A stretch of 64,000 nucleotides of DNA, from positions 6,232,389 through 6,296,388 of the forward strand of contig CM121343.1 of assembly GCA_051530055.1 (NCBI GenBank). Direction: 5' to 3'. Source of the stretch: Neoechinorhynchus agilis. Taxonomy: Eukaryota; Animalia; Acanthocephala. The notes beneath the pieces were generated by a model that saw only the letters and a list, made by a program, of their open reading frames with translations, was not told the DNA's origin and did not search any database. Both the position numbers and the translations under genes were made by a program. This document shows positions 14,901-61,452 of this stretch, in pieces (position 1 is the first letter of the stretch; every line of letters starts with the position of its first letter).

Positions 14901-17778
14901 AAAGTTTCCATTTGAGATCGTTCGACAAATCCCAGACGAGAAATTAATAGGTATGTGATTTTAATCAGACAAATGACAGCTCAGTGGAAATGTTTGAAAA
15001 AAATAAGGATATTCTTAGTCATTTAAAGTGTTAAAAAATGACAAAATGTACTTTGAGGTTTCAATTTTATTTGGTTATGATTCCATTTGGCAGATTTCTT
15101 GGAATCTTGTTGATTTATCTATTAATTAGAGAAGTGTTTAGAAGTCTACATCCGCGGTCGAAATAATTATTTCTATTAAAGACGTTCTGCGAACCTCGTC
15201 GGGTTTTGTTTACTAACAAACTGAGATGATGAACCCTTTAAGAGGTTCGTAGAACGTCTTTTTAATCGAAATAATTATTTCGACCGAGGGTGTAGACTTC
15301 TAACCATAATAATTCTCTAATCACATTCCCTCCGGTATCTCACATATCGACAATTAGAGAAGTAACTTATCGTTAGCATCGGCCACTTTTTCAATTTTAT
15401 TTGGTTATGATTCCATTTGGCAGATTTCTCGGAATCTTGTTGATTTATCTATTAATTAGAGAAGTGTTTAGAAGTCTACATCCGCGGTCGAAATAATTAT
15501 TTCGATCAAAGACGTTCTGCGAACCTCGTCGGGTTTTGTTTACTAACAAACTGAGATGATGAACCCTTTAAGAGGTTCGTAGAACGTCTTTTTAATCGAA
15601 ATAATTATTTCGACCGAGGGTGTAGACTTCTAACCATAATAATTCTCTAATCACATTCCCTCCGGTATCTCACATATCGACAATTAGAGAAGTAACTTAT
15701 CGTTAGCATCGGCCACTTTTTCAATTTTATTTGGTTATGATTCCATTTGGCAGATTTCTCGGAATCTTGTTGATTTATCTATTAATTAGAGAAGTCTACA
15801 TCCGCGGTCGAAATAATTATTTCGATTAAAGACGTTCTGCGAACCTCGTCGGGTTTTGTTTACTAACAAACTGAGATGATGAACCCTTTAAGAGGTTCGT
15901 AGAACGTCTTTTTAATCGAAATAATTATTTCGACCGAGGGTGTAGACTTCTAACCATAATAATTCTCTAATCACATTCCCTCCGGTATCTCACATATCGA
16001 CAATTAGAGAAGTAACTTATCGTTAGCATCGGCCACTTTTTCAATTTTATTTGGTTATGATTCCATTTGGCAGATTTCTCGGAATCTTGTTGATTTATCT
16101 ATTAATTAGAGAAGTGTTTAGAAGTCTACATCCGCGGTCGAAATAATTATTTCGATTAAAGACGTTCTGCGAACCTCGTCGGGTTTTGTTCTAAAATACT
16201 GGATGATGAACCCGACGAGGTTCGTAGAACGTCTTTTTAATCGAAATAATTATTTCGACCGAGGGTGTAGACTTCTAACCATAATAATTCTCTAATCACA
16301 TTCCCTCCGGTATCTCACATATCGACAATTAGAGAAGTAACTTATCGTAAGCATCGGTCACTTTTTCAATTTTATTTGGTTATGATTCCATTTGGCAGAT
16401 TTCTCGGAATCTTGTTGATTTATCTATTAATTAGAGAAGTGTTTAGAAGTCTACATCCGCGGTCGAAATAATTATTTCGATCAAAGACGTTCTGCGAACC
16501 TCGTCGGGTTTTGTTTACTAACAAACTGAGATGATGAACCCTTTAAGAGGTTCGTAGAACGTCTTTTTAATCGAAATAATTATTTCGACCGAGGGTGTAG
16601 ACTTCTAACCATAATAATTCTCTAATCACATTCCCTCCGGTATCTCACATATCGACAATTAGAGAAATAACTTATCGTAAGCATCGGTCACTTTGAGAAG
16701 CTTAAAGCAATGCTCAATGGCGTAAAAGATACGTTATATCAGAAGTGGTCATTTTATAATCTGCCTTTATTACTTAGACAAAGGGTTTAGTTCTCTTTAT
16801 CGTTGCATTAAAGAAAGCACAAAAAGATTAAATCTCATCATAAAGGTGACAATGTACAAAAAATTATAGATTTAATTTTTAAGGTCGCCAAAACAATTAA
16901 TTTAGCTAAATTTGAATGATTCAATTATACGATATTAAAAAATTACCGATATATTATTTTTCTTTATAGAACGCATAGTTTGAGAAATTAAAAGCTTTAT
17001 CTATAAGGATTTTTGTCAGTATTTTGCCAATGAGCGTTCTCGATGGCGTTATTTAGGTTCCGTCGCCGAGGCTCTCTTTGATTATGAAGCACGAAACTCA
17101 GATGAGATTTCAATGAGGAAAGGTGATAGGATTGTGATTCGTGAAACTCGATTGGCTGATCCTGGTTGGTGGAAAGGTCGTAACGATGGTAGCATTGGAG
17201 TGTTTCCTGCTGGATACGTGCAAATCTTTTTGCAAGATTTATCCCAAGCTTCAAGTAGCAATGATCCAAGATTGATACACGTGGACGAAGCTGTGAACGA
17301 CGACAATCCATATCCACAATGTGGATTAAGCCTTAAAAATTCAGAACTTAGTTTTGAGCAGACAAGTAACAATAAAGCAACGCCTGATACGTTCTCCGAT
17401 TCCTTGATGCCATCTTCGGAAGCAGGTGAAACCTGTCAGAAGCGAATTAACGAGCAAGATGGAGTCTTGAGCAGCAATGCGCATTCTTCGCCGAGTTCCA
17501 ATTCGACAAACAACGTTAGGAGAAAAGAAGATGAAATGAGATGCCAAAGGAAGATAATTGACGACTCTACCGAGCGATTGTTGAAGACCGAAGAGCAAGT
17601 TTGTGAATTGAGGAAGGAAGTAATGGATATTAAAGAACGAATGTCTAAAATGGAAAGTAAATTCCAAATGAAGATTGAACAATTAAAATCGTCGATAGAG
17701 TTCCTGGTCGGCAGTTGGCGCGCGTCGTCAGAAACTAGTCCAACAAATGAAAAAATGAACAAAGAAGAGGGCAAATAA
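11943..17778 (+). CDS. CIN85/CD2AP-like adaptor: N-terminal extension, 3 SH3 domains (first two degenerate), C-terminal coiled coil
   Basis: Canonical SH3 GSVAEALFDYEARNSDEISMRKGDRIVI...ADPGWWKGRNDGSIGVFPAGYVQ (17057-17225). SH3-like segments at about 13060-13215 and 13530-13619 joined to 14854-14950, with splice phases consistent. Terminal coiled coil. The 5' exons and start codon are less certain. Confidence 0.72.
15059..16694. repeat. Intronic tandem array, 5 copies of a 320-330 bp unit, each containing an approx. 197 bp fold-back (family A)
   Basis: Unit start TCAATTTTATTTGG at 15061, 15391, 15721, 16041 and 16366. In copy 1, arm GAAGTCTACATCCGCGGTCGAAATAATTATT... (15141) is the reverse complement of ...ATAATTATTTCGACCGAGGGTGTAGACTTC (ends 15300). 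Confidence 0.96.
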
Positions 17779-24100: not shown

Positions 24101-26071
24101 TATCTGGAAAGAATATTAGATTAATGAACGATGATATTGAACGAATTACTGAGAAGAAGAAATTACTCGAAGGAAATCTTCTATCATTGATTGATTCAAT
24201 GGAACGTACCATTCTTGATAAGCATGCACTGTCCCAGAAAAGTTCAAAAAGCAGCGCAGAAGTAACTTTGGATAAATCGAAGATCGACATGCTTAAGGAG
24301 AATAAAAATGAACTTACAAAACGCATTCTAGAGCATGAAGATGATGTTAAGAAGATTTCAGATCGCATCCAACAGCAGAACTCTACAATCGAATCAGTAA
24401 CCCAAGAATTGCAGTCATTAAAGGAAAAAGAAGATTTTCTGAATGTGGACATTCAAAAAAGTCGAAGCGCGTTAGTCCACTGGTTTGTGATCCAATATTC
24501 ATTACTATTTGGATGGGTTTTTTAATTAGAAATTATTTTATGCCATGCTTAAAAGATGGAATTCGTAAATTGATTTTATAAAATGAAAATTACAGAAACT
24601 TTATCTATGAACGAAAACATAACCAGTACATCATCAAGATTATTTGTTGCACTAAAAACTTCCATGTCCTGTGTGTTCATTGCTTATCTTTATAATTGTC
24701 TTCTTTTAGAAAAATTAATTTATTCGTTCAACGCCTTCTTCATTCCCGGATTATCTTTACTTCCACAGTTGCTATTATTCCAAACGAAAAAAGCGCTTTC
24801 ACTTTCCGTAAAGAAGAAACAATACCTACAACAAAATATGTCAAATAGATCTTGTTAATTTTAGTTGACGCGAATAATAACTATCATACTAGGTGCTGGT
24901 GACCATAATCCCCGGATAAAACATATTTTGAATTGAGATATTTCGAAAAAGGAAGCCTAGATTTATCGATCATCCAACTGGTTTTTCTTGTTTGGTATTG
25001 TATGCCTCTAGTTCGCGTGTATTTTTAGATGACTGATGAGATGAGGCTTCCTCTTTCGAAATATCTCAATTCAAAATATGTTTTATTCGAGGAATACAAC
25101 TCTATCATCTTGAAGGATTTTTTGCAAGGGAGGAGGGTCCAGACAGATTCCCTTTTAGTGGTTAAACCTTATTAAAAAAATTTCGTTTGAAAAGTGTATC
25201 ACAAATTAGTGGAATATCAAAACTTTATGAAAAGGCAGCATTTTTACATGATCAAATCGAGAAATTGAATGGACGAAAAATAGAAATCGGCGTATCTACG
25301 AGTGATTCCAAAGAAAGGTGCAGTGGCATTCCTAGACATGAGTATTCAAAGAAAATTGACGAGATTAATCATGAGTTGGAGAAGTATAAGACATTGAACA
25401 AAAACGCGTTAGGAGATTATAAAGATTTTACTCTAAGACGCGAGGAACTTCGGAATCGATTTTGTCAGGCTGAAAGTGAAGGTATGGTAATTGACAACTT
25501 TTTAAAATTATCCGACGAAGCTAAAGCTCGGGTATTGAATGATAAATTTCAAGAATTTAGCACTAAGTTTACAGCAATGTTTCAAAAATTAATACCGACC
25601 GGTCATGCCAGTTTAACAGTGATGAAGATTTTAAATGCTACTTCAAGTGCGAGTACTAGTACAGCGGTTGAAGAAGGTAGTATTCCAAGTCAGATACCAA
25701 GTAATTGCGTGGGACTCGGGATTCATGTACGATTTAATCTAGATCAGAAATATGTTAGGAGTATCGAGGAATTATCGGGAGGACAAAAAACCGTTGTTGC
25801 AGTTGCGATAATACTTGCCCTTCAACAAGTGAATCCTGCTCCTTTTTACATTTTCGATGAAATCGACCAAGCATTGGATGATGAGTACAGAAGTGCAGTT
25901 ACAACTTTAATACATGAAATGTCTCGAACATCTCAGTGTCTTACAACAACATTCCGACCTGAACTTATTAATCTTGCTGACAAGTTGATTGGTGTTTCTT
26001 TTCAGAACAAAACAAGTTCCATGCGGGATATCGAACGAAAAACCGCTCTTGAGTTCGTTTCAAAAACTTAA
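21123..26071 (+). CDS. SMC3: Cohesin subunit SMC3 (divergent), 3 large exons
   Basis: Walker A GRNGSGKSNIF, NPYFIVKQSKI, hinge GYRGLLIDII...EVTARGRLFSHIVDTD...EGDRMTEPGFLDGG, signature LSGGQKTVVAVAIILALQQVNPAPFYIFDEIDQALD, TTTFRPEL. About 1,200 aa in total. Confidence 0.93.
24899..25095. mobile_element. Fold-back element, family B, in an SMC3 intron
   Basis: 24911-24958 is the reverse complement of 25044-25093 (AGGCTTCCTCTTTCGAAATATCTCAATTCAAAATATGTTTTAT). The end GGTGACCATAATCCCCGG resembles the sequences at 33842 and 55531. Confidence 0.85.
25030..25068 (+). ncRNA. Minimal type I hammerhead ribozyme motif with intact core
   Basis: TGA-CTGATGA-GATGAGG(CTT)CCTCTTTC-GAAA-TAT-C-TCA: 3-bp stem I, AUC cleavage triplet, palindromic AUAU stem III, imperfect stem II. 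Confidence 0.72.
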
Positions 26072-28206: not shown

Positions 28207-28451
28207 GTGCCAGTGGAAATATCATTAAATATTGTCTTCTTTTTAACTACATTGGACTATAGTATGCAAAAAGATATAAGCTTAAAAGCGGTCTCAAAAT
28301 ACATGAAATGGAATCTTCGGTAAAACGAAATTTGAAACTAAGCGGACGAATCAATCCTAGAGCAAAAGATAATTGTCGCTTGAAGGGATTTGTTTCGTTG
28401 AACCAATTCACCATCGTATAAATATGCAGCAAAATATCCATTTTTTCGATT

Positions 28452-28493
28452 GTCCTCATTTTATTTCGGAGTTTTATTCCTTCTTCAGAGTCC
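28452..28493 (-). ncRNA. Degenerate hammerhead core at the 3' end of the Penelope-like relic
   Basis: Minus strand reads CTGAAGA-A-GGA(ATAAAAC)TCC-GAAA-TAAAATG. Stem I has only 2 bp and position 17 is G, so it is probably inactive. Confidence 0.5.
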
Positions 28494-28499
28494 TGAAAG

Positions 28500-29620
28500 C
28501 ACGTGATCTACATAGGTAGTCAGAATAGTTCAGTGAAGAAGTCAACTGGTCCACTTGGTTAAGCACGATAACGTGTCGAACGTTGACCGTCTCCTATGTA
28601 CGATCACCTCACTCATTCCCACTTTTCATCTCGTTCAAAATAGGAATCGCTATTGGTTTCCTTCTCTCTCGAGCGTCCGCTAGTCAATTCCGCTCGGCGT
28701 TGAAGTCTCTCAAGTTCCCGCGTTCACAACCTTAACCGCGGTCCTAAGATGAGTAAATCCTTACAGTCCTGCGCATCGCTGTATAGAATGCTTGCTTCAT
28801 CATCCAAGGATGGTAAGAATCTCGATGCATGATTATGGCTTTCTTGCAAGGTTTACGGTACCATTCAAATGTGTCGTCTTCCTTAAATCACAAACTGGGG
28901 AAGTGGTCCGTCAGGATGCCCCTTGTCATTCATAGCCGCCCGGTTGTATCTATTGTATTGAGCCTTTGTTCCAATTCATCCACTTCAGATGTTTCCCTGT
29001 AGGACAGTAGCACGTCGTCCACATACATGAGGTAAATCCGTTTTTCGGTAACTGGAGCAAGTCTGTTCCCCATAATCAAAACCTTCGAACTTGCCGATGG
29101 ATCCTATTTCCAAATCTGAAGGGATTACATTTGAAGATCAAGCGTATGAGATATGTCTCTATATCTCAAAACCATGAAGGTTGAGCTCTCCTTTCGTCTC
29201 GGCAATCTTTTCTCCGTGACTCTTAGCGCAGTATCATTGTCCACGTTTGTGTATAAGGCGTCAAAATCGAATGACATTATTTGGCAGTTATTTAAATTCT
29301 CTCGTCAGGAATGCAAGGATTCAGTCCGTTCCTTCCTCGCGTTTTAGATATGCCCTTGTCGTTTGGGGGAGTGGATTTAGAGTCATAGCTAACAGCTTTG
29401 AAACCCAATAACCAGGACCGTTCACAACCTAATTGATCAGCCTGCACTTCATTAATGATCCAGTTGCCCCTTGGATGGAAATCCCTGGCGTCGTATTCGT
29501 TTTGATTATTGGGTACATTAAATATGAATGATATGCGCATGTCGCCGATTTTCCTCGACCCGAGGAGCGAACTACTTTCTTGGATTCATTCCCTTATAAA
29601 TGTCCTGAAGGAGATAACGA
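28500..29620 (-). mobile_element. Decayed Penelope-like element reverse transcriptase relic
   Basis: Minus-strand peptides in the order expected for PLE RT: SFDFDALYTNVD, LIMGNRLAP, YLMYVDDVLL, WYRKPCKKAIIMHRDSYHP. Multiple stops and frameshifts. No GIY-YIG domain seen. Confidence 0.8.
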
Positions 29621-32308: not shown

Positions 32309-32815
32309 AAGCAAGCATACATAATTTATAGTTTCTTCGACGCTCCTATTCATCGGCGCTGGCCAAAATGCTAGCCGCATTGCCCCGCTGCACCGTAATG
32401 CTTATTTTTTGCGCCAAGAACGACGTCGATCTTGGCTCTCCAGTCGCTGCGTAACATTCTAGAACCCACTAATCTTTGTAGATTAGATGGAAGACGCCCT
32501 GATGGCGTGACCGTATTTCCTTGGCGGGAGGGAAAATGTTTGTTGTGAGATGCAACGTGTGTGGACACGTTGGCAAACTCCAACATCGACCACCCGAAAA
32601 AAGGTCCAGGAGGAGCGGCGACGGCAGCAGAGGATCGGAAATGCTCAAAATACAGGGAGCTAATCCGAAATTACCATTTTGTCCCCTTCGGTGTGGAAAA
32701 GTACCTTGGGAGGGTCGGCACTGGCCCTCCTGAAGGACTTGGGGAAACGAATTTACGCAGCGACTGGAGAGCCAAGATCGACGTCGTTCTTGGCGCAAAA
32801 AATAAGCATTGCGGT
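32309..32815. mobile_element. 5'-truncated, internally inverted CRE-clade fragment (lineage B)
   Basis: 32309-32454 is the 3' end on the minus strand (VQRGNAASILAS). 32455-32815 is the RLE region on the plus strand ([24 protein letters not shown]). 32392-32454 and 32753-32815 are a 63 bp inverted repeat. Confidence 0.85.
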
Positions 32816-33074
32816 CTATTTATTTGTGCAAATAAATCACAATGCGCACACTTGGAAAAACAGCAAAGAATTAAGAAAATAAGCCGAAAACGTTAACTTT
32901 CCATTTATCAAAATAATAAACAATATTAAAAAGATACACAGAGTTTTAAAGCCAATCGATTATTTAACTAGCTCAAATGTGAAGCGACACACAATACCTA
33001 ATATTTTCTATAAAGGATTAAAATCGAAAATAATAGAAGGTAGTTTGAATTGTCGTTTTGTCAGCTATCGGGCT

Positions 33075-33830
33075 AATAATAACACGTTTTTATTACCACA
33101 CACCCAAGCAAGCACGGGAACCACGTATCTTTGGATTCGTGCTGTTTGATTGAGATTGTAATTCGGAATGAGCTGCAAGTCGTCGCATGTGCATGAGTCT
33201 TTCCTCCGATTCAGGCCGTAGACTCATGGGTTGATTGTACGATGGCGAAAATGATTTTTTATATAGTGTGGTGCGCGGGAGAGGCGGATTGAATCTGTTC
33301 GGACATCGTGTATTTCGGACGGGTTCCCTTGGCGAGATGAACGGCAGAAATTTAGATGGAAGGGAACGCAGGGAGGTCATGTATTTATCGAAGAATTTGG
33401 AAAGGTGTTCTTCGATTGGTGGGAGGTCCTTGGAGCCAATTTTGCAGGCTCGTTTATTTAGGGAGGAAAGCAAGCGCAGTCGATGGGTGGATAAATTGCA
33501 AAAGGTTGGGTATGCATATGAGATTGCGGGGACCACAACGGACCAATAGAAATGTGCTAGATCGCGTGGGCTGACTCCGAGCAAACGCAAGAGCTTGATT
33601 AAATGCAATTTAGCAGTGGCTTTTGCTACGACGCCATTAATGTGGATGTCCCATTTGAGGTTGTGTTGGAAGATTAGGCTCAGAATGCGAAGCGATGTGG
33701 AGCGTTGGATATCGAGAGGGAGCGGTGGAATATCAGTCCTAGGTTTTCGAAGCGACGGAATAAGTTCATAAGATTTGGAGAAATTAATTAAGAGTTGGTG
33801 GGTGGTGCAAAAATCTTTAAGAACTTTTGA
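33075..33830 (-). mobile_element. 5'-truncated LINE fragment (L2/Crack/CR1-like RT thumb region)
   Basis: FCTTHQLLINFSKS...ILSLIFQHNLKWDIHINGVVAKATAKLHLIKLLR...FYWSVVVPAISYAYPTF. Ends near an AATAAA at about 33090. Confidence 0.75.
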
Positions 33831-33832
33831 AG

Positions 33833-34003
33833 TACACTTTCGGTGAGAATAATCCCGGTCATTATATATTTTATTTATTCGAAATATTTCGCGAGGTATC
33901 CTCGCCTCTTCAGTCATTGTTTGCAAGTTTTTTCAACTGTGAATGTGAATATTTCGAATAAATAAAATATGTAATGACCGGGATTATTCTCACCGAAAGT
34001 GTA
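33833..34003. mobile_element. Fold-back element, family B, with near-perfect 56 bp arms
   Basis: 33833-33888 is the reverse complement of 33948-34003 with 1 mismatch. The spacer CATTGTTTGCAAGTTTTTTC is shared with about 44762. Confidence 0.9.
33880..33916 (-). ncRNA. Minimal type I hammerhead ribozyme motif with intact core
   Basis: Minus strand reads TGA-CTGAAGA-G-GCGAGG(ATA)CCTCGC-GAAA-TAT-T-TCG, followed by AATAAA. Perfect 6-bp stem II. Confidence 0.8.
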
Positions 34004-34040
34004 ATTTTATTATCCCGAAGGACTTTCTATCGATGATTTT

Positions 34041-34168
34041 TAGAAGTGTTATTCAGATCTTCGCCCAGCAAATAATTTTATATTAAAAACGTTTCGAAAC
34101 TCGTCGCGTTCGAAATGTATTAAATCGAAAAGATTATTTACTTGCTGAAGACCTAAATAACACTTATA
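34041..34168. mobile_element. Diverged fold-back element, family A
   Basis: Ends TAGAAGTGTTATT...AATAACACTTATA. The internal AAAACGTTTCGAAACTCGTCGCGTTC matches 46349-46385 and the 15 kb array. Confidence 0.75.
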
Positions 34169-35394
34169 ATAAAATAGTTAACACATAGACTGTCAAATTT
34201 GTCTTTTATACTTTATCGAGGTTCGTATACACCTTAATAGTTAAGTAAATCACCTATTTCGAATCTCAACATCATTATTTTGTTCGAAATTGGTAGTTTT
34301 AGTTCTATCTCCAAATGGGTTACTTTCTAGATTTAAAATTCACCGTGTGACAGAAAACAACGAGCTTGCAATAATAGTGGACCAATCTGCGGGAGATTCA
34401 GGGTAACCGTTTCCTAAAAAATACGAGAACTCTCGACTTTAGATTTTGATAACCCATTCGAAAGTGTATAAATAATTGTCTCCAACATTGTCAGGATCAA
34501 AATCATCCTCATTAAAAATATCATCACTTTTCTTTAGAGACGAGCTGTGCACTGCAAGAAACACTTCCGAAATTCGTTCAGACTTCACTTCAATTGGCAT
34601 CAAGTGACCAACATTGGCATTACAAAACATCGAATAGCAATGAACATTAAATCCACCAAATTGGAGATATTCGAGGGCATACATCGTCTTTTTTTAACTT
34701 TAGAAGATGCATACAAAATATACACAATGCGAAACAACCAGTCGAATCCTTCGTCTCCCACATTATTTCCTTCCAGACATCTTATGATCTCCGAGCCATG
34801 AGATCAGATAGAAAATAACAAAAGAACTATACCCGCAGGATAATTCAGCATGTAAAGCGGCTTTTTAAAGTAGCAAGACTCCCTTGCATGCCTCAGCCGA
34901 ATAAGTTTGCAGCAAATAATGAAGGATTTTTTCATTTGAATCGACCGGACCGCAATTTTTAATGAGACCGAAAACGAAGATCTCTAAGTGGAAACTTTTC
35001 ACTAATGACATCCGATTTGAAAGTTCTATTTGATTACGGATGACGGTGGTCTAAAGTGCCGGGTGCCTATTTCTGGATCATGGTACTTAATGGTTAAAAA
35101 CCGAAAATGTTAAATGAAGGCGCAAATGTCTAAAAAATAATTAGATTTCATTGATTTCGTGGACACATATTTAGAAAAAAAGGAGAGTAGAACTAGCTCA
35201 CGATTTGTTTCTAAATCCACGAGAAGGTTGAAAAATGAAATTTTAATTCCTTGGCTTATTAAAGACGTAAATGAATCGAGTAAAACACAAAAAGATAAGA
35301 ATTAACTGTGTGTTGTGCATGTGGGTTCATTTATCCTTCGTTTTCTTTATTTCATTCTGCTCTCTAATTCTTACATGCAAATCTGATCATTTCC

Positions 35395-36467
35395 TTACCG
35401 TTCAGCATTGTCTCGACGTTCACCATTACCACCACCACCACCTTGATTGAAAGGTACAAGGGAAACAAAAAGTCCAATTATAAAGTTAAACATTGTTTTT
35501 AACGCGATTCGTAATCTACTAATCTCAGAAGCTCGACCATCTTCATTGGTGTTAGTATCGACATCAGCAGCTCTTCGGATCTGTAATGCTGGCCTGTGTC
35601 TAATAAAAATCAGAATCACGACCGTCAACAATCCCGCCAAAACAAGACTCCAGACGTTCATATCATCTTGTGTGAGTATAATCGCGATCAAAACGGAAAA
35701 ACGAATTATACCCGGAAGGTTTTCAACAATCCCCATCATATTCCCAGCTTGATTCGGCTGATTATTATTGGCTTGCACGTTGGCATTCCTTCTACGTTCT
35801 CCGTTCTCATTGGCTACGTTCGTAGGTTCGGTATTTGTAGTGTCTTCTAAAACACGATTCTTAGCATAAATGGTCCTTGAGACATCTTCCTTAAGACGAT
35901 TTAAGTAGACTATCACAATGGGATTCTGAGTCAACTCATTTATCAAATGATTGCGAACATCATCCGGTGTCGCTCCATTCATCACTTGATTCATTCTATA
36001 GTTGTACTGATCATAACTATACTTTTCAATCGTATCACTCGTTTCATCGACCGTTTCAGTTTTAGTGGTGTCCGATTGAACACTAAGACTGGAAGGGGAT
36101 AATTTCGGATCGCTCACTTGTGGCCATACAATAGTCCAAAAGAATAATGTGTCATTCTCTTAAACTACTCTATGCTGGCGTTTGTTCGCAGCAAATGTAA
36201 AAGTATTTTATCGGCAGTACGCTGATTGGATTGGTCGTTTAATTGACCCAATTGAGTTCGATCGTCCAAAACACGACCACTGTGGACCAAACGTAACTGA
36301 TCCGTGTGCTCGGAACCAATGATTCCTTCATTGTCGATTTCAACCAAGTGGTCCTTCAACTCACCAACAGTCCACGTAGCCGGAGCTTCATCGATAGCTA
36401 TGTTACGTATAGGACGTCTTACTAATCTTACCACTACCTTTATTAAACTCCGTTCCGAACCACTCAT
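35395..36467 (-). CDS. HERPUD: HERP/HERPUD-like ER membrane ubiquitin-like-domain protein, 2 exons
   Basis: N-terminal UBL (WTVGELKDHL...LRLVHSGRVLDD...LHL), two hydrophobic segments and a C-terminal FIIGLFVSLVP motif typical of Herp. GT-AG intron at about 36119-36170. Confidence 0.8.
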
Positions 36468-36600
36468 TCTTCCAAATAATCACTCAAATCCTTCTGTAAA
36501 GAAATACTCAATGTCATTGTGCAAGGCCACAATTCTTCCGTAGGATACGCGTCACACAATCAAATCGTGACGAAATAACCCGAATCGCTCTCAAAAATCA

Positions 36601-36800
36601 CACAAATATTTTTTATAGCGAGTTATAATAATTGGTTGATTTATTTGATAATTTTCGGCCTTCGGGTAGTAAGCAGTAGACTGAAGAAGGTCTACATGAA
36701 GGCCAAAAATTATCAAATAAATCAAAAAATATTTGTGCAATTTTTAAGAGCGAGACGGATTCGCGTTTATGATAATTGATTTATTTGATAATTTTCGGCA
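36601..36800. mobile_element. Fold-back element, family C, with hammerhead core; a third partial arm at 36772-36799
   Basis: TTGATTTATTTGATAATTTTCGGCCTTC pairs with GAAGGCCAAAAATTATCAAATAAATCAA. Outer ends CACAAATATTTTT / AAAAATATTTGTG. Core CTGAAGA-A-GGTC(TACATGAA)GGCC-AAAA-ATT-A at 36681-36712. Confidence 0.75.
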
Positions 36801-36881: not shown

Positions 36882-39750
36882 ATGCAAGTAAAACTAAATT
36901 ATGTTCATCAAATCACTACTTTGGGACAAGCAATTTCATTTGCACGGCAAACACACGATCATCATCCGATGTCACGACCCGTTGACGCTGCAATGATACA
37001 ATTTGACGCAACCAGCCACGACCGCCCAACTGCGTATTCGGTCCAATCAAATACCGAGGAAACGCACAACGCTTCCGGGACACCAGGCATCTCCATAGGT
37101 ATATGCCCCGTTTGTTTAGACTCTTTTTCAATCACGAAATTGGTTGGTTTTGCGCATTCATGTGCCCGTCAAATCACGTTGTGGGGAATATGGTCAAATC
37201 TCGCGATCGCTTCAAACGGCAACACTAGAAAATCCGTGTTCCTCCCATGAACATTCTGAAACGGATCCCAAAGGGCGCACGATATCTAGTCGCTAAAGGA
37301 TTCACCACACTTCTGCTGGACTGCTTCGAGCAAAATTCAGAGTCCTCTTGGACACTGCCCTTTGCTTTCCCCAGACTTGTACTTTCCGCTGGCGACAGTT
37401 CGGAGGAGTCCCTCACTGCGGTAATCAAAAGACGCCTCGTATCCTTTGAGGAAAGTTTCTTGAGCATTCGTCGTTTAGCAAGGGAGGATCCCAAACAACG
37501 TGCGAATGAGACTAACTGTCATCGAACATCTACGAGACCGCTTGCTGAGCGCGTATCTTCAAAACCCGCCGATGGAGATGTTCTGGGAGCAGTCCGTATT
37601 TTGTCCTCCTCTGATGCATTTGCATGTGATTCGCTCTCCACACTTCAGGGTTTAAAGGTGAAACATCCGCAAAGTTCAACCCAAAGAGAAATTCCATACA
37701 TGTTCCGTCCCTCAAAGGCACTCCACTTCGACAGTTGAACTGAGAATGGCCATATCCTCCTTCGCCAATGGCTCTGGCCATAGTCTCGATGGGCTTCGTT
37801 CTTAGCACCTAAAGGATATTATGTCGCTCTCAGTTGGAGATGCAGGCCACTTCCTTGCTACCCATCTTTGTCGACTAGTCAACCTTTTCATCGAAGAAAA
37901 TTTACATCCGCGGGCAATTAAGTTATTTTTTGGTGCATCTTTGTGCACTTTGAACAAAAAGACTGGTGGGATTCGTCCCATCGCCGTTGGCTCTGCTCTA
38001 CGTCGGCTCGCAGGTAAAATCCTTTGCAAGCGTATTGCAGAAGGGATTGGGCAGCAACTTCGCCCAGTCCAACTGGGATGCTGCACACCATACGGGTACG
38101 AGGCCATTGTCCACGCACTCCGCCAGTTCATCACAAATAGTTCAACGCCGTGTGTGATTTTGAAGTGCGACTTTACAAATGCCTTCAATTCCACTCACCG
38201 TACCGCTCTGTTTGAGGCACTCAAAAGTCACACACCAGAAACTTTTCCTTATTTTCGCAACGCATACGGGACCCAGACTCCTTTGCTCTTCAATGACCAC
38301 CTAATTTGGTCTGAAAGAGGAGTACAGCAGGGAGACCATCTCGGTCCAATCGCTTTCTCCCTTGCAGTGAATCCAATAGAGCACTCTCTTGGGTCCAGCT
38401 TTAACGCTTGGTACCTGGATGAGGCTAAGCTCGGAAGTGATCCCTCCGTAGTACTGCGCGATCTGGAGACACTCGTAAGGGAGACTGCGGGATCGGGTGT
38501 TGAGCTTAATGCAGGGAAATGCGAACTGTTGGTAATGAACATCGAAGTCGAGTTAGCGCAGAGCAAAATCATCAAAGGTTTCAGAAATCTGGCACCCGGT
38601 ATAGAATTGATCACTCTAGACTGGCTGAGTCTTCTAGGGAGCTGCGTTTTCGATTCAAATGTGGAAAATAAAATCGATTATCTACTCCCGAACATCACGA
38701 TGCTGTGCGATAGAGTCCGGGAACTTTCGTCACACGAGGCTCTATTCCTGATCAAGAATACCCTCTTCATCCCGAAACTCCTTTGTAAACTCCGTACGGC
38801 TTCCTTCTTCAAGCACGTCGATAAGTTAAAGAAGCTCGATGACATTGTGAAGGCGTGTCTCGAGCACATTTTAAATATCCAGCTATGAGGCGAAGCCTGG
38901 CGACAACCGTCATTGCCTGTATTATCCGGTGGCTTGGGTACTCGAAAAACATTAGATGTGTCGTTGCCCGCATTTTTAGGATCTGGGACCCAAGTTTTGT
39001 TTAGCGGACGAATTTCTAGCGGCGGTCCAAGCATAGTGGGAGAAGACGGGTTACAACCAAGTTCCCGTGAATGAAGCAGTCTATCTGGGATAAACCTTTA
39101 GTCGCCCGAGCTCATAGTTCTCTAATTTCAGGCTCTCGCGACGAGGTCGACCGGGCTAGATTACTGGGAGTCTCTACAAGAGAATCGGGAGCATGGTTAG
39201 AAGCCCTACCCATTGCATCCATGGGACCACTCCTCGTAGACGAACGGAGTGTCCCTCAGATTATGTCTACCGATTTGTGTCGAACATCGTTGCCGATGTG
39301 GAATGATCGTGGATCCACTGGGGAGACATGTTCATGTTTGCATCAAATCAGGGTGTCGTCCAAACATTCTAGAGCCAAGCAACCTGTGCAGGCTGGATGG
39401 TAGTCGTCCGGATGGCGTCACCGTATTCCCGTGGCGAGAAGGCAAATGTCTTCTCTGGGATGCCAAGTGTGTAGACACGTTGCGGAGGACCGTAAGGTGG
39501 CGAAACATAAAGAATTAACTAGGTCTCACGTTTTGTACCCTTTGGAGTGGAGACTCTTGGTGCGCTCGGTAACTCGGCGCTTAGATTTACGAAGGAGTTA
39601 TCGAGTAGACTCCAGGCCAAGACAGGAAATACAAGAGCCGGTGCCTTCCTACGCCAAAACATTGGTCTCGCGATCCAAAGAGGAAACGTAGCTAGTGTGG
39701 TCGTGACCACTGCGGGGAGAGCGATGCCTCTTCTTCGCGGTCGGTGGTGA
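36882..39750 (+). mobile_element. Near full-length decayed CRE-clade (RLE) non-LTR retrotransposon (lineage A)
   Basis: CPVC zinc finger, LKRIPKGAR, GIRPIAVGSALRRL, DFTNAFN, GVQQGDHLGP, AWYLDE (canonical YLDD altered), LPVLSGGLG, CRCG...H...C knuckle, RPDGVT...WDAKC RLE and QRGN C-terminus. Several frameshifts and stops. Confidence 0.9.
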
Positions 39751-40794: not shown

Positions 40795-40984
40795 AAGCAA
40801 GCATACATAATTTATAGTTTCTTCAACGCTCCCATTCATCGGTGCTGGCCAAAATGCTGGCCGCATTGCCCCGCTGCACCGCAATGCTTATTTTTTGCGC
40901 CAAGAACGACGTCGATCTTGGCTCTCCAGTCGCCGCGTTGATTCGTTTCCCCAAGTCCTTCAAGAGGGCTAGTGCCGACCCTCT
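40795..40984 (-). mobile_element. 3' end fragment of CRE lineage B
   Basis: Near-identical to 32309-32454 plus the reverse complement of about 32710-32760. Same 3' terminus ...TATGTATGCTTGCTT. Confidence 0.88.
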
Positions 40985-44681: not shown

Positions 44682-44824
44682 CTCTTGTGGCGATTCACAC
44701 CCCGAGAGTCAGTTTTATTTTGTAATATTTCGGGGGCCATACCCACCTTTTCAAACATTGTCATTGTTTGCAAGTTTTTTTCGGAAAATAAAACTGACTC
44801 TCGGGGTGTGAATCGCCACAAGAG
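44682..44824. mobile_element. Fold-back element, family B-related, degenerate hammerhead on the minus strand
   Basis: Arms CTCTTGTGGCGATTCACACCCCGAGAGTCAGTTTTATTTT and its complement. Minus strand reads TTGAAAA-G-GTGGG(TATGG)CCCCC-GAAA-TATT. Spacer shared with 33915. Confidence 0.75.
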
Positions 44825-45637: not shown

Positions 45638-48216
45638 TTGATTGTAATACTATCTTCTTTAATTTTCTCATGTATTCTATCGATTCATGTGATTGAATCG
45701 CGATTGATACAGTCTATAACAACTCGCGTTTACAACTACACTTATTATAGTGATCGAATACGAAACATTACTCCGTATTTTGTTAAAAGACGAACTTTTT
45801 TATGTCCTTTCATCCTCGTTCAAAGCGGTACTCAATGCTGCTTAATTGCCGCTCTCATACTCAATGGTTTGGTTATTTCTTTTTTATATACTCAAATAAT
45901 ATAGCATTCATTAGTGATTCTTCTAACATTAACAACGGTGGTTACATTGGAGCCGACATTTCCTGGAAAGGATGGTGGATCTAAACAACGAATACCGTTT
46001 GTTGTACTTGAGAAAACTAAATTAAGCCGGGTTTGATTTCTATATGCATAAGGATCTTTCTTGAAAAACCTTAAGCAATATGACTTTCTATACAATCCAA
46101 GCTTGTATCTTTGTATCTATGGATTACTTGTAACTCATTTAACAATTGAAGTCGCGCATCAGTCAACAATAAGGTATGTTTTTTTTGCATTTTGAAATTC
46201 AGGAAAGCATTTGATTAGTTTGTGCGCTCCTCTAAATTTGCATCTCATTGAAAGATTTAAAAAGATTCAGTTGTTTCTCCGGAAAGTTCAAATAAAATTC
46301 CTGTTTCATCTTAGAAGTGTTATTTAGACCTTCACCCGGTAAAGATTTTTTTTCGATTAAAAGCGTTTCGAACCTCGTCGGGTTCATCATCAATTTGTTA
46401 GTTAACGTCTTAATTTAAAAAAATTACCGGGTGAAGACCTAAATAACGCTCTAATCATATACCCCAGTACCTCACATATCGACATTTTGCAACAATTAAT
46501 TTAGATGCGATATCCTAAGAACAATTTCTCATTTTCTTCAACTCATTCTCATTTCATCAATGAGTTATTTATTTACTCGCAATGGATACTCACGATTGAA
46601 AAACTGCTTATTACCGGACGAAACATGTTACCATCCTTCAAGCTCTTATAAAGTGGCAAGTACATCAATATTGTAGAAAAATAATATTTGTAATTTTTAG
46701 ATTCCTCACGTAATAATATTAGCGTGCATTTTAGCTGATAAATTATTAGGCTCGATTTTTCTCTTTATTTTCCAAAAAAGGATCACTGTAAGCAACGTAA
46801 AATCTATTAATGGGCATACATTAGAAGTGGAATTGTCAAATTTAAATATTAACTGTAAAAAATTTAAATTTGAAGCTGGATGGTGTTTATGGACAAAATG
46901 TTGTGATATCTCTTTCTTTCAAATACGTCCGTTCTATCCATTCGCTGTAAGATTAATTATTTTTTCATTATGGTATTGTTCCAAATGTAGGATTCGTCAA
47001 ATGGGAATCGAGTAAGTATCAGATTGGTGCTGGAAAATCACGATAGTTGGAATCGTAAGCTGTATTCGATGCTATTGGATGAAAGGATTACAAGGTTCTT
47101 GAAATATGCAATAAAGTTCTCGATATAGTATCCATACGCTAAGGTTAACAATCAGTATCCCGATTCAAGAGTCAATAATTACGAAACTGGATAAAACATG
47201 CAAATATCGATGTATCATTGTCGCATTAGGATCATCAATACAGAAATATGCGCTTTTGCTAGAATTGATAAAAAGGTTTTTATATGGCTCTCTTGTTTAA
47301 ATTTTGTAATATTTGGGCGATTTGTGAAATGTATCGTATTTGGCTCTATTCCTAAATAATAAGATCGGCGCAACTACACTCATATGTGACATTTAAAACA
47401 ATAATTGTGAAGCGATTGAAACATTACTAATGAATTGTGTGTATGCACCGATATTTGATACATTTCTTTTGTTGAATGAAATTCATATTACGAAAATATC
47501 GCTTATGATGAAACCTATTGATAGTAATCCCTTGATGTTTCCAAATGGCACCCGTGTGACTATGTATTGGATATGCACTCTTGATGAGTATGAGACGTAT
47601 AAATGGCCTGGCCGATTATTCCACCAGTCATCTCAATTTGGACGCGACGTTAATCTAAGGATTTTGATGACAAAAGGATGGGATTGTCATTCGGTAAATA
47701 TTTGTTCCTCTTGAATATGAATTTTTAAACGAGAAATTGACTTTCCAACAAAAGTTCTAGAAGGCAAAATAAATCACTCAAGAGAGTTTTATTAAATTGT
47801 TCTTTTGAAAAGAACATTAGACACTTGTTCCTTATTGTTTTTATAAGTGATTAGATTGTCAGTAAAGATTAATTAGCGAGTAGAGAACACATTTGAAATT
47901 TAATACATAAAATGTTTTTCTTACTCGATTGCATTAATCGCTTCCTGGATGATGATGATAGGCTCGTGTAATAACAACAATACGGCCGTTTAATTCATTG
48001 GAGTTTGTGTCCTATGGCAAACCGTGCTGGGTCAAAGAGTTTAATGGTGATTTTTTAAAGGAACATTTATACTCAAGACCTGGATCATCATACTCTGCGG
48101 TTCATGTATTTGTGTCGGACCACGGATCTCGGCGTAACTTAGGCCTTTACTACGATCAGATGTGCAACAAAGATGGGAAAATATGTGGATATAAAGTAGA
48201 GATTGGTTGGATGTGA
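45638..48216 (+). other. Possible lineage-specific small genes; no model established
   Basis: Several short ORFs with hydrophobic or Cys/Trp-containing segments and plausible GT/AG boundaries, but no recognisable domain. Confidence 0.25.
46311..46483. mobile_element. Fold-back element, family A, hammerhead core on the minus strand
   Basis: Arms TTCACCCGGTAA / TTACCGGGTGAA. Minus strand reads TTGATGA-T-GAACC(CGACGA)GGTTC-GAAAC-GC. The tail CTCACATATCGACA is shared with the 15 kb array. Confidence 0.82.
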
Positions 48217-56684: not shown

Positions 56685-58228
56685 GTTCTTCCTTCGATCG
56701 ATGAAGGATTCTAGACGGAGACAAACATAAAGAAATCATCCATCACACCTTCGACTAACACCCGCGCTCGCTCGCTCGCGAATGGATTAATCATTTTGCC
56801 GCCGCCGCCGCCGCCGTATGCGTGCACGTCTATGGCGGCGGCGGCCGCCACGTAGGCAGCAGACACGACGAAACCCGAATAGAATTGCAAAATCTATTTT
56901 GTATAAACGCTAAGCTTTTGCGTCTTCACGGTGCAAAGTACATAAAAAAACCCAGGATCAATGTGTGTGCCATACACGCACAAAGGAGTTACTGTAGCGA
57001 TGACGTATTACACTTAATACGGAAGAATCCACTGAGATTCCATGAGTGAAAAGGAATTTAATGACGTCAGTACGGACGTATTTGGGCTAAATTTCGGTGG
57101 TTTGTGGAGTGAGACGTGGGATGTTAAGGCTTTATCCACAACGGTGAGGGACACCGCGTAAATGTTTATTAAAAGTTAGACGTGCACTACTAGTGACTCA
57201 TTAAGAAAAATCAACACTTTGTTCAACTAAAACTGTTTTGTCTCGGTTCTTTTGAATTATCACTTAATATCCGGTAGTCGAGATGATTTTGCTGAATGGA
57301 ATCTCTTTTAGTCTAAATACCTCTTCCACAATTAATGAATTCACCTAAATTTGACACATTTAATTTTAGGTTTCTGTGTTCACGACTGCTTTCTACACAC
57401 AAATGAATTGTCGTGCTTTAACTCCCTTCCAGGTTCCAATGGTATAAAACTTTCAACCGTCTCGTTCTTTTTGTTAGTCCAATTTGCAACGGTGAAGAGC
57501 ACGATCGATTTTGTAATAACATTCAATTGCCAGCTATGACATTCGTACCCTTGAATTTTTGTTGTTATAACGCCTTGAAGCATCTTATCCTTTTTGTAAA
57601 GGTAATCTAATGATTTATTTTAAAGGCTTCTAAATGGAGAAGCCGTCGTTGTTCTATAATGCGAGTAGAATGGCTGTTAACCATGAAGTTCACTTCGCCG
57701 CAATATTCGAGAACATTTGGGAAAATTTCGTCTGATAAAAGTGAGGATATTTTTGAAAAAAACACGTTTGAATTAATTACTTTTTCCGTATTACACATGA
57801 GAGCTTTTTATTTACCTCTAAGGTTTGCTCAGTTGATGGATACGAAAAACGACTTTCACTGAGATTTGTTGTCAGTTGCCTCGATATGGCCGGCCGCTTG
57901 CAACTAAAGAACTTATGGAGTCAAGTCGTCATCCACTTTAATTGATTTTGTAAATTCCTGTAAATCCTGCATCTTGGCATCTATGGCGACGACGATCATG
58001 TAATTGGAATCATCGTGTCGAGATGGACAAAAGAGAAACTCTGAGTACTGGGTTTCCCCCGAACAAATTAATAACTAGATTTCCAACAAAGAACGTTTTC
58101 TGGGGAAATTATGCCCTTATCCAGCATTTGGCAATTCTCTGCAATCTCGTAGTTTGCTTATCCACTTTGGCAAGAACGAATACTGGCCTTTAGAATTAAT
58201 TAATATTTGTTAACATTCAATTGGTACC

Positions 58229-59620
58229 GATGACGCACAACCAAAGAGGATGCAATTCGGCGGAATTGAAGAAACTCAGTGATGAATTCGGTCGCCTCGG
58301 GAGGTATCTGAGGAGACCAAAGGATTCACAACGGCATGGTTCAGGGTATTTATCGTTTCCCTTCCTAAAGTCGATCGACTTTGTACTCAAATAAAACCGT
58401 ATATTGATAACTTCATTTACACTTGATAAACGCAACAGCCTAAGCCACGTACACGCCAGAGGAAAATCAAAAGCTGATTCGTGGCAAAAGTGGCGAAGTT
58501 TGTACATTCCGTAGTTGTGCCGAGATGGACAAGAGTTCTTAATCCACGCTCGAGGGTTAGAATCCGTTACCGTCGATGACGCACAACCAAAGAGGGTGCA
58601 ATTCGGCGGAATTGAAGAAACTCAGTGATGAATTCGGTCGCCTCGGGAGGTATCTGAGGAGACCAAAGGATTCACAACGGCATGGTTCAGGGTATTTATC
58701 GTTTCCCTTCCTAAAGTCGATCGACTTTGTACTCAAATAAAACCGTATATTGATAACTTCATTTACACTTGATAAACGCAACAGCCTAAGCCACGTACAC
58801 GCCAGAGGAAAATCAAAAGCTGATTCGTGGCAAAAGTGGCGAAGTTTGTACATTCCGTAGTTGTGCCGAGATGGACAAGAGTTCTTAATCCACGCTCGAG
58901 GGTTAGAATCCGTTACCGTCGATGACGCACAACCAAAGAGGATGCAATTCGGCGGAATTGAAGAAACTCAGTGATGAATTCGGTCGCCTCGGGAGGTATC
59001 TGAGGAGACCAAAGGATTCACAACGGCATGGTTCAGGGTATTTATCGTTTCCCTTCCTAAAGTCGATCGACTTTGTACTCAAATAAAACCGTATATTGAT
59101 AACTTCATTTACACTTGATAAACGCAACAGCCTAAGCTACGTACACGCCAGAGGAAAATCAAAAGCGATTCGTGGCAAAAGTGGCGAAGTTTGTACATTC
59201 CGTAGTTGTGCCGAGATGGACAAGAGTTCTTAATCCACGCTCGAGGGTTAGAATCCGTTACCGTCGATGACCACAACCAAAGAGGTGCAATTCGGCGGAA
59301 TTGAAGAAACTCAGTGATGAATCCGGTCGCCTCGGGAGGTATCTGAGGAGACCAAAGGATTCACAACGGCATGGTTCAGGGTATTTATCGTTTCCCTTCC
59401 TAAAGTCGATCGACTTTGTACTCAAATAAAACCGTATATTGATAACTTCATTTACACTTGATAAACGCAACAGCCAAAGCTACGTACACGCCAGAGGAAA
59501 ATCAAAAGCTGACTCTTGGCAAAAGTGGCGAAGTTTGTACATTCCGTAATTGTGCCGAGGTGGACAATAGTTCTTAATCCACGCTCGAGGGTTAGAATCC
59601 GTTACCGTCGATGACGCACA
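58229..59620. repeat. Tandem array, about 346 bp unit, 4 copies
   Basis: The unit start GATGAC recurs at 58229, 58575, 58921, 59266 and 59610. Confidence 0.97.
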
Positions 59621-60286
59621 ATTCGAATCTATTCAATTCGAATCTGTTATTCTGATCATGCTGCGTCATTATTGAATTTAACTGTCCGCAAGGATAGTTC
59701 TTTCGTGCTTGTTTTGCGACGTATTCAGAGTCAGAAATTATTGTGCCGTCCATAGTTTTCAACTTTGTGCACTTTGGAGCGGGGATTGGTGGGCCATGGG
59801 ATATTCAGCGCTGACACCGATACGATAAATCGGTTGGCGTATTGGATTTTCGAGAAGGGCCTTCGTTCTGCGGCTTTCTTCCGCAAGAATATGAGCATTT
59901 CAATCGAGCAGGAAAATGATGCCAGCATAATGGGTTGGCTGGAGCTTTGATTTGAGTGTATTTAATAATTTGAATTTAAGAAAATGTTTCGATTTTAAAT
60001 TTTATTTAGTAGAATTGCTTCTTTCACTCGACCTTGAAAGCGATTTTTATTAGGATTGACCTATGAATCCTTAGATTTGTGAATAGGTTCGCACTGATAG
60101 CAAGAACGAACGAGTCGAAAGCGATTATCGATCACAAAAGTGGTACCAATAATAGAAAATATCAATATTTGAGATTTCACGCTCTCTTTGCATCGATGAT
60201 TTTTTCTACTTTTCGTGAAATTCTCCGTAGTTTTAACTTTCGTTCTAAAACTCTTTTATGTTTCAAGATTGAATTGTTCATAAAGT

Positions 60287-60506
60287 GGTTGTTTTATGGC
60301 GGAGAAATTAAAATGATTTTACTTTTTAAAATCTGATTGGTTTCGTAGGCACAATCTTGTGCGTCTTCTGATCAAGATTGCTTGTGAACTCACATATTTA
60401 AAAATTTACAAGCAATCTTGATCAGAAGGCGTACAAGATTGTGCCTCCGAAACCAATCAGATTTTAAAAAGTAAAATCATTTTAATTTCTCCGCCAGAAA
60501 ACAACC
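60287..60506. mobile_element. Long fold-back element (family D), arms of about 105 bp
   Basis: GGTTGTTTT..GGCGGAGAAATTAAAATGATTTTACTTTTTAAAATCTGATTGGTTTCG.AGGCACAATCTTG is mirrored on the right. A partial relative GTAGGCACAATCTTG lies at about 55064. Confidence 0.88.
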
Positions 60507-61452
60507 AAAACTCTTTTATCTTTGTTGCCGATTCCCGTTGTATAAAACTTCTTATAAAATAAGTTTTTCTCTTAGAATCTCCTGTATTTTGTATCAAGCG
60601 GCCACGAATTTCTTTGCATATTTTTGGCAGAATTACCAACCGTTTTTGTTTCTCAATTGCGGTCATTGCAGCTCTTGAACCCAAGGCTGCGTCGCTTTGG
60701 TTGCTATCTCAGATTATTCATTTTCCCTCGCGTTAGGGGAATATCGTTTGATTGAACCTCATAGGTGGTTCGGCTCGAAAATGTTTGGACGTGTATCGAA
60801 GTCAGGGCTCTCCTGATGATGGCATTCTAATGGGTGGCTCAGCCGGTAACACAAAACCAAAGGGGACGAAATACCTTGTTGAATTGAGGAAACTCACTGA
60901 TGAGTCTCGCCTCCTCTAAAAGTATCTGAGAATCCACAGGGATGCTAACAAACTCGTATACCGTACCGTCTTGGGCATCGAGCGCAGACCAACACTTACC
61001 CTGTCTGTGTCCATTCGACCGTGATTGGAAAAGAATAATCTTAAACAAATCTCCTGATGATGGTTTTAATTCTGTGTCTCACCAGTCTGATTTCTTACAT
61101 ACCAAGCCGTGTCGACCTGACTCGTCCACATTGGAACCAATCCGACACTGGCGTGGTAGAAAACAAATCGGGATAACACAGCATCAATAATAAGTAAATT
61201 TTGTTTATTTATCATAGCTGATTCTAATTTTTTTTATGTATTATAATTTCTAAATATCCAATTATGCAGTAGATTGATCGCTATGATTTATAAAATGATT
61301 TTCAAGATGATTCAACACTTTAAACGTTTTAATCAGCTACTTTTTAAACATGTCTGAAGTAACGTTCTTAATTTGCGCCTTTTTGTTGACTTTTACTTCC
61401 ACATTAAAGACGTTTAAAATTCTTATCTGCGCTTAACGCAACAAATTTTTAG

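Follow-up and report, generated by a model that had tools for sequence, protein, structure and literature searches.

A minimal hammerhead in a 171-nt hairpin that abuts a truncated LINE: probable footprint of a Penelope-type retro-insertion in a thorny-headed worm genome

Introduction

Is a hammerhead with an apparently perfect core, set in a hairpin with nearly perfect arms, a working ribozyme, and what does it mean that such a hairpin lies end to end with a truncated LINE on the same strand? Both questions are raised by a 171-nt fold-back on the minus strand of a 64,000-nt stretch of Neoechinorhynchus agilis DNA, the whole of which is referred to here as the window. An earlier note on this DNA, made from the letters alone, had singled the hairpin out as a well-preserved hammerhead and a candidate self-cleaver and had proposed either that it was inserted into the LINE or that the two were joined by a template switch during reverse transcription.

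The obvious point of reference is the minimal hammerhead (min-HHR) of Penelope-like elements (PLEs). In these motifs helix II is enlarged to 6-8 bp and has G10.1-C11.1 as its closing pair, one nucleotide between A9 and position 10.1 stays unpaired, and there is no helix III loop; in its place stands a 4-nt palindrome at 15.1-16.1 that pairs only in a dimer (PMC4209133). They are found chiefly as scattered single motifs from truncated elements, and at times as pairs on opposite strands (PMC4209133).

Results

A single minimal hammerhead

The motif runs from the 3' half of the hairpin loop into the 3' arm (Table 1). Every feature that the earlier note had named was found in place, including the AUAU, the AUU site and a GCGAGG/CCTCGC stem II in which all six pairs are intact. 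Two of its descriptions need qualifying: the core called perfect does hold all of the catalytic boxes, but with one extra unpaired G between A9 and G10.1, and the 3-bp stem I (U-A, C-G and G.U, with mismatches beyond) is present with a G.U as one of its pairs. The extra G is itself a hallmark of the min-HHR, since PLE hammerheads typically carry an unpaired base at that point. The downstream AATAAA is likewise there, but it carries little weight because this hexamer has a frequency in the window of 1.1 per kb per strand and no poly(A) follows it.

Table 1. Features at and around the fold-back (all positions are those of the window; the arrow marks the predicted cleavage site)
Feature	Position	Strand	Description
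Whole fold-back element, 171 nt	33833-34003	−	Head-to-head pair of truncated hammerhead-bearing retroelement ends
Short inverted copy (5' arm), 56 nt	33948-34003	−	Reverse complement of the long copy's last 56 nt
Long 5'-truncated direct copy, 115 nt	33833-33947	−	Upstream region, minimal hammerhead and 56-nt 3' tail
Type-I minimal hammerhead motif	33880-33916	−	UGA-CUGAAGA-G-GCGAGG/AUA/CCUCGC-GAA-AUAU-U↓UCG
Helix I, 5' strand UGA	33916-33914	−	
Core box CUGAAGA	33913-33907	−	
One extra unpaired G	33906	−	Between A9 and G10.1
Helix II GCGAGG	33905-33900	−	Loop AUA, then CCUCGC at 33896-33891; 6 bp, perfect
GAA box	33890-33888	−	
Palindromic AUAU (15.1-16.1)	33887-33884	−	No helix III loop
U17	33883	−	A-U-U site; predicted cleavage between 33883 and 33882
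Helix I, 3' strand UCG	33882-33880	−	
AAUAAA	33879-33874	−	
12-nt perfect palindrome CGAAAUAUUUCG	33880-33891	−	Covers C11.1 to position 1.3
Second, older fold-back, family B min-HHR	34037-34172	−	About 30 nt upstream; GAAACGU kept
C-terminal ~195 aa of APE-type LINE ORF2	33243-33832	−	Profile positions 642-846 of 853
Head-to-head twin of RT element 3' end, 424 bp	32392-32815	+	63-nt arms, 98%

We searched both strands of the window with a strict min-HHR descriptor that demands the core with no more than one bulged base, a G-C-closed helix II of 4 bp or longer without mismatches, the GAA, a palindromic A-N-N'-U and a non-G at position 17. The motif at 33916-33880 was the sole match, in keeping with its description as the best-preserved hammerhead of the window. 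Across 300 composition-preserving shuffles the mean was 0.003 strict matches per window, and no shuffle gave a match with a helix I of at least 3 bp together with a helix II of at least 5 bp; the looser pattern CTGANGAG...CGAAA has two matches in the window, where 0.28 would be expected. Since the strict descriptor is unique in the window and only 0.003 matches are expected, the motif is not, by these counts, a chance match. It has the core and an NUH site, a 6-bp helix II with an unpaired base and a palindrome that replaces helix III, and on its sequence it is assigned to the PLE-type min-HHR class. This class is reportedly also treated by Lunse, Weinberg and Breaker in RNA Biol 14:1499.

None of the Rfam hammerhead models (types I, II, III, HH9 and HH10) matched anywhere in the window at gathering thresholds, nor in 33700-34150 or 24850-25150 at E <= 10, as is to be expected since min-HHRs are without helix III; the only Rfam matches at the locus are generic long-hairpin families of plant miRNA precursors. 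Type-I readings with a hairpin helix III, in which the U at element position 127 or 131 would be U16.1, were tried and dropped because they leave no helix I.

The hairpin and its relatives

The arms of the hairpin measure 56 nt with one mismatch and enclose a 59-nt loop; stretched to 59 nt they contain two mismatches (97%), which puts complementarity at 97-98% over 56-59 nt. The minimum free energy (MFE) of the 171 nt is −91 kcal/mol, as against −26 ± 3 in shuffles (z = −19). The fold and the arm alignment agree with the note's count of one difference in 56 arm positions. The inverted copy ends at AAUAUU, just short of the complement of helix II, and the 3' tail of the direct copy ends in ...GUGUA. 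The direct copy is homologous to copies at 44786-44682 (−) and 24985-25100 (+); its terminus also has a homologue in the latter element, near 24.9 kb, namely at the end of the inverted copy.

Several further fold-backs in the window have hammerhead-like boxes beside their loops, and three of them align with 33833-34003. Across three diverged fold-back families the invariant columns gather on the catalytic boxes, ATGAC-TGA and CGAAATAT, and the tails have drifted apart. The truncation points vary from copy to copy: the inverted copy spans the entire hammerhead at 24906-25096, halts at GAA in 33833-34003 and halts further 3', about 10 nt beyond GAAA, in 44682-44824, and at 34037-34172 it is the direct copy that is truncated inside the hammerhead, with the CUGAUGA box absent. 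The closest relative, 44682-44824, has a homologous loop and 40-nt arms that are 100% complementary, and its core is broken by a 6-nt insertion after C3 and a G8 to A change. The arms are thus independent of ribozyme function, perfect arms here going with a dead core.

Two fold-backs are flanked by target duplications. The element near 24.9 kb (24877-25110, with CUGAUGAG...GAAAUAUC, placed by the earlier note in an SMC3 intron) is flanked by an approximate 11-13-bp duplication, AACT(CT)ATCAT, and its inverted copy is about 18 nt longer at the 3' end than its direct copy. The fold-back at 60260-60506 has 103-nt arms (95%), an exact 13-bp duplication, AAAACTCTTTTAT (60247-60519), and, at just one of its sides, a 26-nt extension. 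In 60247-60519, a clean case of a retro-type twin insertion with a "tail," we recognised no hammerhead core.

Such hairpins could also be read as MITE-like DNA-transposon fold-backs, or as chance inverted repeats with hammerhead-like boxes. The long terminal inverted repeats, the small size, a possible TA flanking the element (CACTTTCGG...CCGAAAGTG) and the purely generic Rfam similarities would all suit a MITE. The TA, however, belongs to the palindrome and is missing from the flanks of the closest relative; arm length and sequence vary from copy to copy, and the 11-13-bp duplications of the relatives differ in sequence in the way that is typical of retro-insertion. Chance in its turn is opposed by the strict motif, which is about 300-fold rarer than one per window, and by the recurrence of the same boxes as conserved islands in diverged relatives. 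We regard this explanation as barely credible.

A second hammerhead family, family B, is also represented, with a consensus-like UGAUGA-U-GAACC...GGUUC-GAAACGU/C. It forms a tandem array of five 330-bp units with a degenerate core at 15059-16694, as well as solitary fold-backs at 34037-34172 and 46311-46450. Two more tandem arrays, both of 97-98% identity, lie at 1368-2619 (278 bp x 4.5) and 58228-59621 (346 bp x 4), the unit of the latter containing the string CUGAGGAG.

Cleavage competence

Modelling and analogy alike speak against the candidate self-cleaver of the earlier note, given that there is a single PLE-type motif whose site strand lies in the 56-bp stem. The S. mansoni min-HHR, the one case assayed, showed no detectable cleavage as a monomer, and dimer and trimer constructs cleaved only weakly (PMC4209133); PLE min-HHRs as a class would need a second copy to build helix III, with weak cleavage even then. 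In the predicted fold of the present element the site strand (33887-33880) is paired into the long stem, and the second AUAU-U offered by the 5' arm has no helix I partner after it. A modelled dimer of the long copy reaches an MFE of −47.8 kcal/mol in a structure built on an inactive CGAAAUAUUUCG duplex, and among folds that allow an active double hammerhead the best has −27.8 kcal/mol, 20 kcal/mol worse, in an energy model that ignores tertiary contacts and co-transcriptional folding. With one catalytic core only, and the site strand buried in a long stem, this copy would not be expected to self-cleave, and by these models and by analogy with S. mansoni it probably does not do so at the locus.

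The arms could rescue the ribozyme if they served as an extended helix III, giving a type-III-like hairpin that would cleave after the U at 33948 (AUAU-U↓C). The 5' arm does end in AUAU-U opposite GAA-AUAU, with A15.1-U16.1 and H17 in place, a fold with the core unpaired costs 1.7 kcal/mol above the MFE, and an elongated helix III has restored some activity to PLE min-HHRs in vitro (PMC4209133). Helix I, however, is missing in register, as the C-A-C after U17 cannot pair with the U-G-A before C3, and the offset pairings that can be drawn (4 bp, CAUU/AAUG, or 3 bp, UCA/UGA) are not stabilising. The way in which arm and core abut differs among the relatives, one of which, as described above, has perfect arms and a dead core, and the Rfam type-III models give no match. 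A type-III arrangement was rejected on the grounds that helix I fails in register and the relatives do not keep the geometry, and we hold a functional hairpin ribozyme of this kind to be very improbable.

A probable head-to-head twin insertion

What the anatomy does resemble is the insertion style of PLEs. These elements often have an inverted, 5'-truncated copy adjacent to them (PMC8557442); short target duplications are a signature of their insertion (PMC8557442, PMC3846280, PMC11167929), and an optional tail of 30-40 bp at one end and two RT start sites have been described (PMC11167929, PMC3846280). Purified PLE protein cleaves and extends both DNA strands in vitro (PMC11167929), which provides a direct route to head-to-head copies. 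PLEs also tend to land in or beside earlier copies (PMC6765202), and in one case the target, a non-LTR element, was not duplicated on insertion (PMC3846280).

At 33833-34003 an inverted, 5'-truncated copy adjoins a direct copy and the 3' termini of both face outward. We therefore consider it likely that a short hammerhead RNA was retro-inserted in PLE fashion and that the 171-nt hairpin is what this left behind, not a working ribozyme unit. One cDNA would have copied the last 115 nt of the RNA, comprising an upstream region, the minimal type-I hammerhead and a 56-nt tail, and at the other DNA end a second cDNA would have been primed that copied the last 56 nt only; joined head to head with their 3' termini outward, the two would share the tail as 56-bp arms. 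Dual priming at this particular locus is suggested by the geometry, and the PLE parentage of this hammerhead family (family A) by the class of its motif and the manner of its insertion. Within the parent element, the hammerhead would presumably act in tandem transcripts, by analogy with the known class.

The earlier note had ascribed the similarity of the arms to youth or homogenisation. Of these, youth holds up, while homogenisation becomes superfluous, since an inverted 5'-truncated copy of the PLE kind suffices (PMC8557442, PMC3846280, PMC11167929): under a twin insertion, near-identical arms point to a single recent event. One observation runs the other way. In the element near 24.9 kb the arms differ mainly in the hammerhead part and not evenly along their length, which would fit an RNA that already carried both arms. 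Head-to-head twins are, moreover, found in an RT element without a hammerhead (32392-32815); they are not exclusive to hammerhead elements, and the responsible enzyme is therefore not certain.

No full PLE carrying this hammerhead was found in the 64-kb window. About 5 kb from the hairpin, at 28444-29540 (−), lies a decayed RT relic with a YVDD piece (weak RVT_1 match, E = 0.054), which the earlier note called Penelope-like; it is followed by CUGAAGA-A-GGA...UCC-GAAAU and a tail unrelated to that of 33833-34003.

The adjoining LINE fragment

The earlier description of a 5'-truncated LINE beginning, on the same strand, within a few bases of the end of the element is confirmed by BLASTP, tblastn and a profile built from 18 long relatives (E = 2.4e-44). 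Homology begins at about 33832-33812, within a few bases of the 3' terminus of the hairpin. The LINE frame, which continues from the hairpin, has 246 stop-free codons and ends with a stop at 33095-33093; the LINE 3' UTR probably runs to about 32816. Among 1.84 billion representative proteins, HMMER found 2027 matches, the best of them at 41% identity, and the long ones (830-1170 aa) align at their C-termini. RVT_1 was present in all six of the long matches that were scanned and Exo_endo_phos in three. Pfam and PDB sequence searches with the fragment itself were blank because most of it lies beyond RVT_1. The sequence supports an APE-type LINE and no finer label.

The check proposed in the earlier note, a search beyond 34170 for the missing 5' part, was run to 36500 and found nothing: with the 18 long relatives (tblastn) and with the profile HMM, no LINE sequence was detected upstream of the hairpins in the six frames of 32800-36500. 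By this evidence the LINE fragment is genuinely 5'-truncated and abuts the 3' terminus of the hairpin.

The hairpin/LINE junction

Insertion of the hairpin into the LINE, as the earlier note had put it, finds no support: LINE sequence upstream of the hairpins and a target-site duplication are both lacking. No direct repeat of at least 7 nt flanks the hairpin at 33833-34003, and no target duplication was found around the hairpin together with the family-B fold-back, around the LINE, around hairpins plus LINE or around the whole cluster. An apparent repeat, ACTTC(T)AAAA, was discarded because the upstream one of the two copies is the family-B element's conserved terminus.

The stretch that holds the hairpins and the LINE is a pile-up of retroelement pieces. 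On the far side of the LINE, the head-to-head twin at 32392-32815 abuts the presumed LINE 3' end; it derives from an RT element without a recognised endonuclease domain (labelled 'CRE' in the earlier note), has 76.7% identity to 39363-39482 and 95-97% to 40866-40983, and no target duplication was found for it. A second adjacency in the window of a hammerhead fold-back and a non-LTR element lies at 36577-36800 and 36882-39691, where a fold-back with a degenerate CUGAAGA box stands about 80-120 nt upstream of an RT-bearing element on the same strand. That element is nearly full-length and non-LTR-like, with a confirmed RVT_1 and with zinc-finger and endonuclease domains assigned by eye.

The contact of the LINE with the 3' terminus of the hairpin most likely reflects one of three processes. 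Retroelement pieces may have piled up at one site; the hammerhead RNA may have been primed from a DNA 3' end at the LINE truncation point; or reverse transcription may have switched template from a nascent LINE cDNA. As far as the sequence goes, a template switch fits the geometry of the junction, which priming from a DNA 3' end would produce equally. Exact abutment on the same strand would, by a rough estimate, arise by coincidence at about 1 in 1000 per junction, which counts against a LINE separate from the hairpin. We give a mechanistic link between hairpin and LINE a distinct minority chance, and the remainder to nesting or coincidence.

In its fullest form, a template-switch chimera would be the product of one insertion event: target-primed reverse transcription (TPRT) of the LINE, about 75% toward the ORF2 start or at a broken RNA end, would have jumped to the 3' end of an abundant hammerhead RNA and copied 115 nt of it, and the other DNA end would have primed the same kind of RNA to yield the 56-nt inverted arm. 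This would explain why the hammerhead element's natural 3' end (...GUGUA) is joined on the same strand to an internal LINE position, with neither LINE sequence upstream nor a target duplication at the junction, and both parts look young (arms 97-98%, LINE frame open for 246 codons). Yet no duplication was found around the composite, the LINE 3' end is undefined and abutted by another insertion, the fold-backs at several loci are without any LINE, so that the hairpin needs none, and the case is a single post hoc example in a repeat-dense stretch. We judge such a chimera unlikely. The broader proposition, that hairpin and LINE come from one retrotransposition event in which LINE cDNA or a broken LINE DNA end primed a Penelope-derived hammerhead RNA, strikes us as rather improbable.

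Discussion

The "perfect hammerhead in a perfect hairpin" appears to be what is to be expected of Penelope-like retrotransposition debris in the genome of a thorny-headed worm. The motif class has been described before and works, if at all, only in pairs. To list the element at 33833-34003 among active ribozymes, or to claim a new hammerhead topology for it, would be a mistake. Wider interest attaches to one feature, the same-strand fusion of an element 3' terminus to a truncated LINE. Were a single-event origin true, the genome of an animal would show directly that LINE replication and PLE/retrozyme replication interact, with a bearing on which enzymes mobilise hammerhead repeats. If such fusions turned up independently elsewhere in the genome, they would document that reverse transcription switches template between the RNAs of LINEs and hammerhead elements, and would inform how non-autonomous hammerhead repeats are mobilised.

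HDV-like ribozymes occur at the 5' ends of the non-LTR elements R2, RTE and L1Tc (PMC6765202), and here too a self-cleaving-ribozyme motif stands directly 5' of a same-strand non-LTR element. The ribozyme, however, is of another class, and the motif cannot be the 5'-processing device of this LINE because the LINE is truncated inside the region downstream of the RT.

Template-switch chimeras of LINEs (of the U6-L1 type) and twin priming of L1 offer a further parallel. Between them they share with the present locus a small RNA copy joined at its 3' end to a same-strand 5'-truncated LINE, together with an inverted segment on the 5' side. Here, by contrast, the inverted segment repeats the same 3' end and not an upstream part of the LINE, and this is a single case, with no flanking duplication or poly(A) shown.

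The non-LTR retrozymes of animals are non-coding, AT-rich, hammerhead-bearing repeats that are thought to derive from PLE pLTRs (PMC7229834; 10.64898/2026.07.22.740005). The element at 33833-34003 is likewise a non-coding AT-rich hammerhead repeat, and a related degenerate family does form a 330-bp tandem array (15059-16694). Unlike retrozymes, it has a min-HHR in place of a canonical type-I hammerhead with loop-loop contacts, and it is solitary: there is no tandem repeat at the locus, only a single hammerhead copy, and for this reason it would give no monomeric or circular RNA by double cleavage.

The closest parallels lie with the PLEs themselves. Helix I, of 3 bp, differs from the 4-5 bp of S. 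mansoni and the 2 bp of D. virilis (PMC4209133), and the palindrome grows to 12 nt (CGAAAUAUUUCG), so that an inactive duplex is favoured; in other respects the motif matches PLE min-HHRs in its type-I topology, the CUGANGA...GAAA core, a 6-bp helix II with G10.1-C11.1, the unpaired base, the palindromic A-N-N'-U in place of the helix III loop and a short helix I (PMC4209133). As an insertion, the element differs from known PLE insertions in being extremely short (115 + 56 nt) and without an ORF, in having no target duplication and in the fusion of its 3' terminus to an internal point of a LINE. What it has in common with them are the head-to-head copies with outward 3' termini, the variable truncation and the position next to another such element, and its relatives in the window add the one-sided extension and the 11-13-bp duplications.
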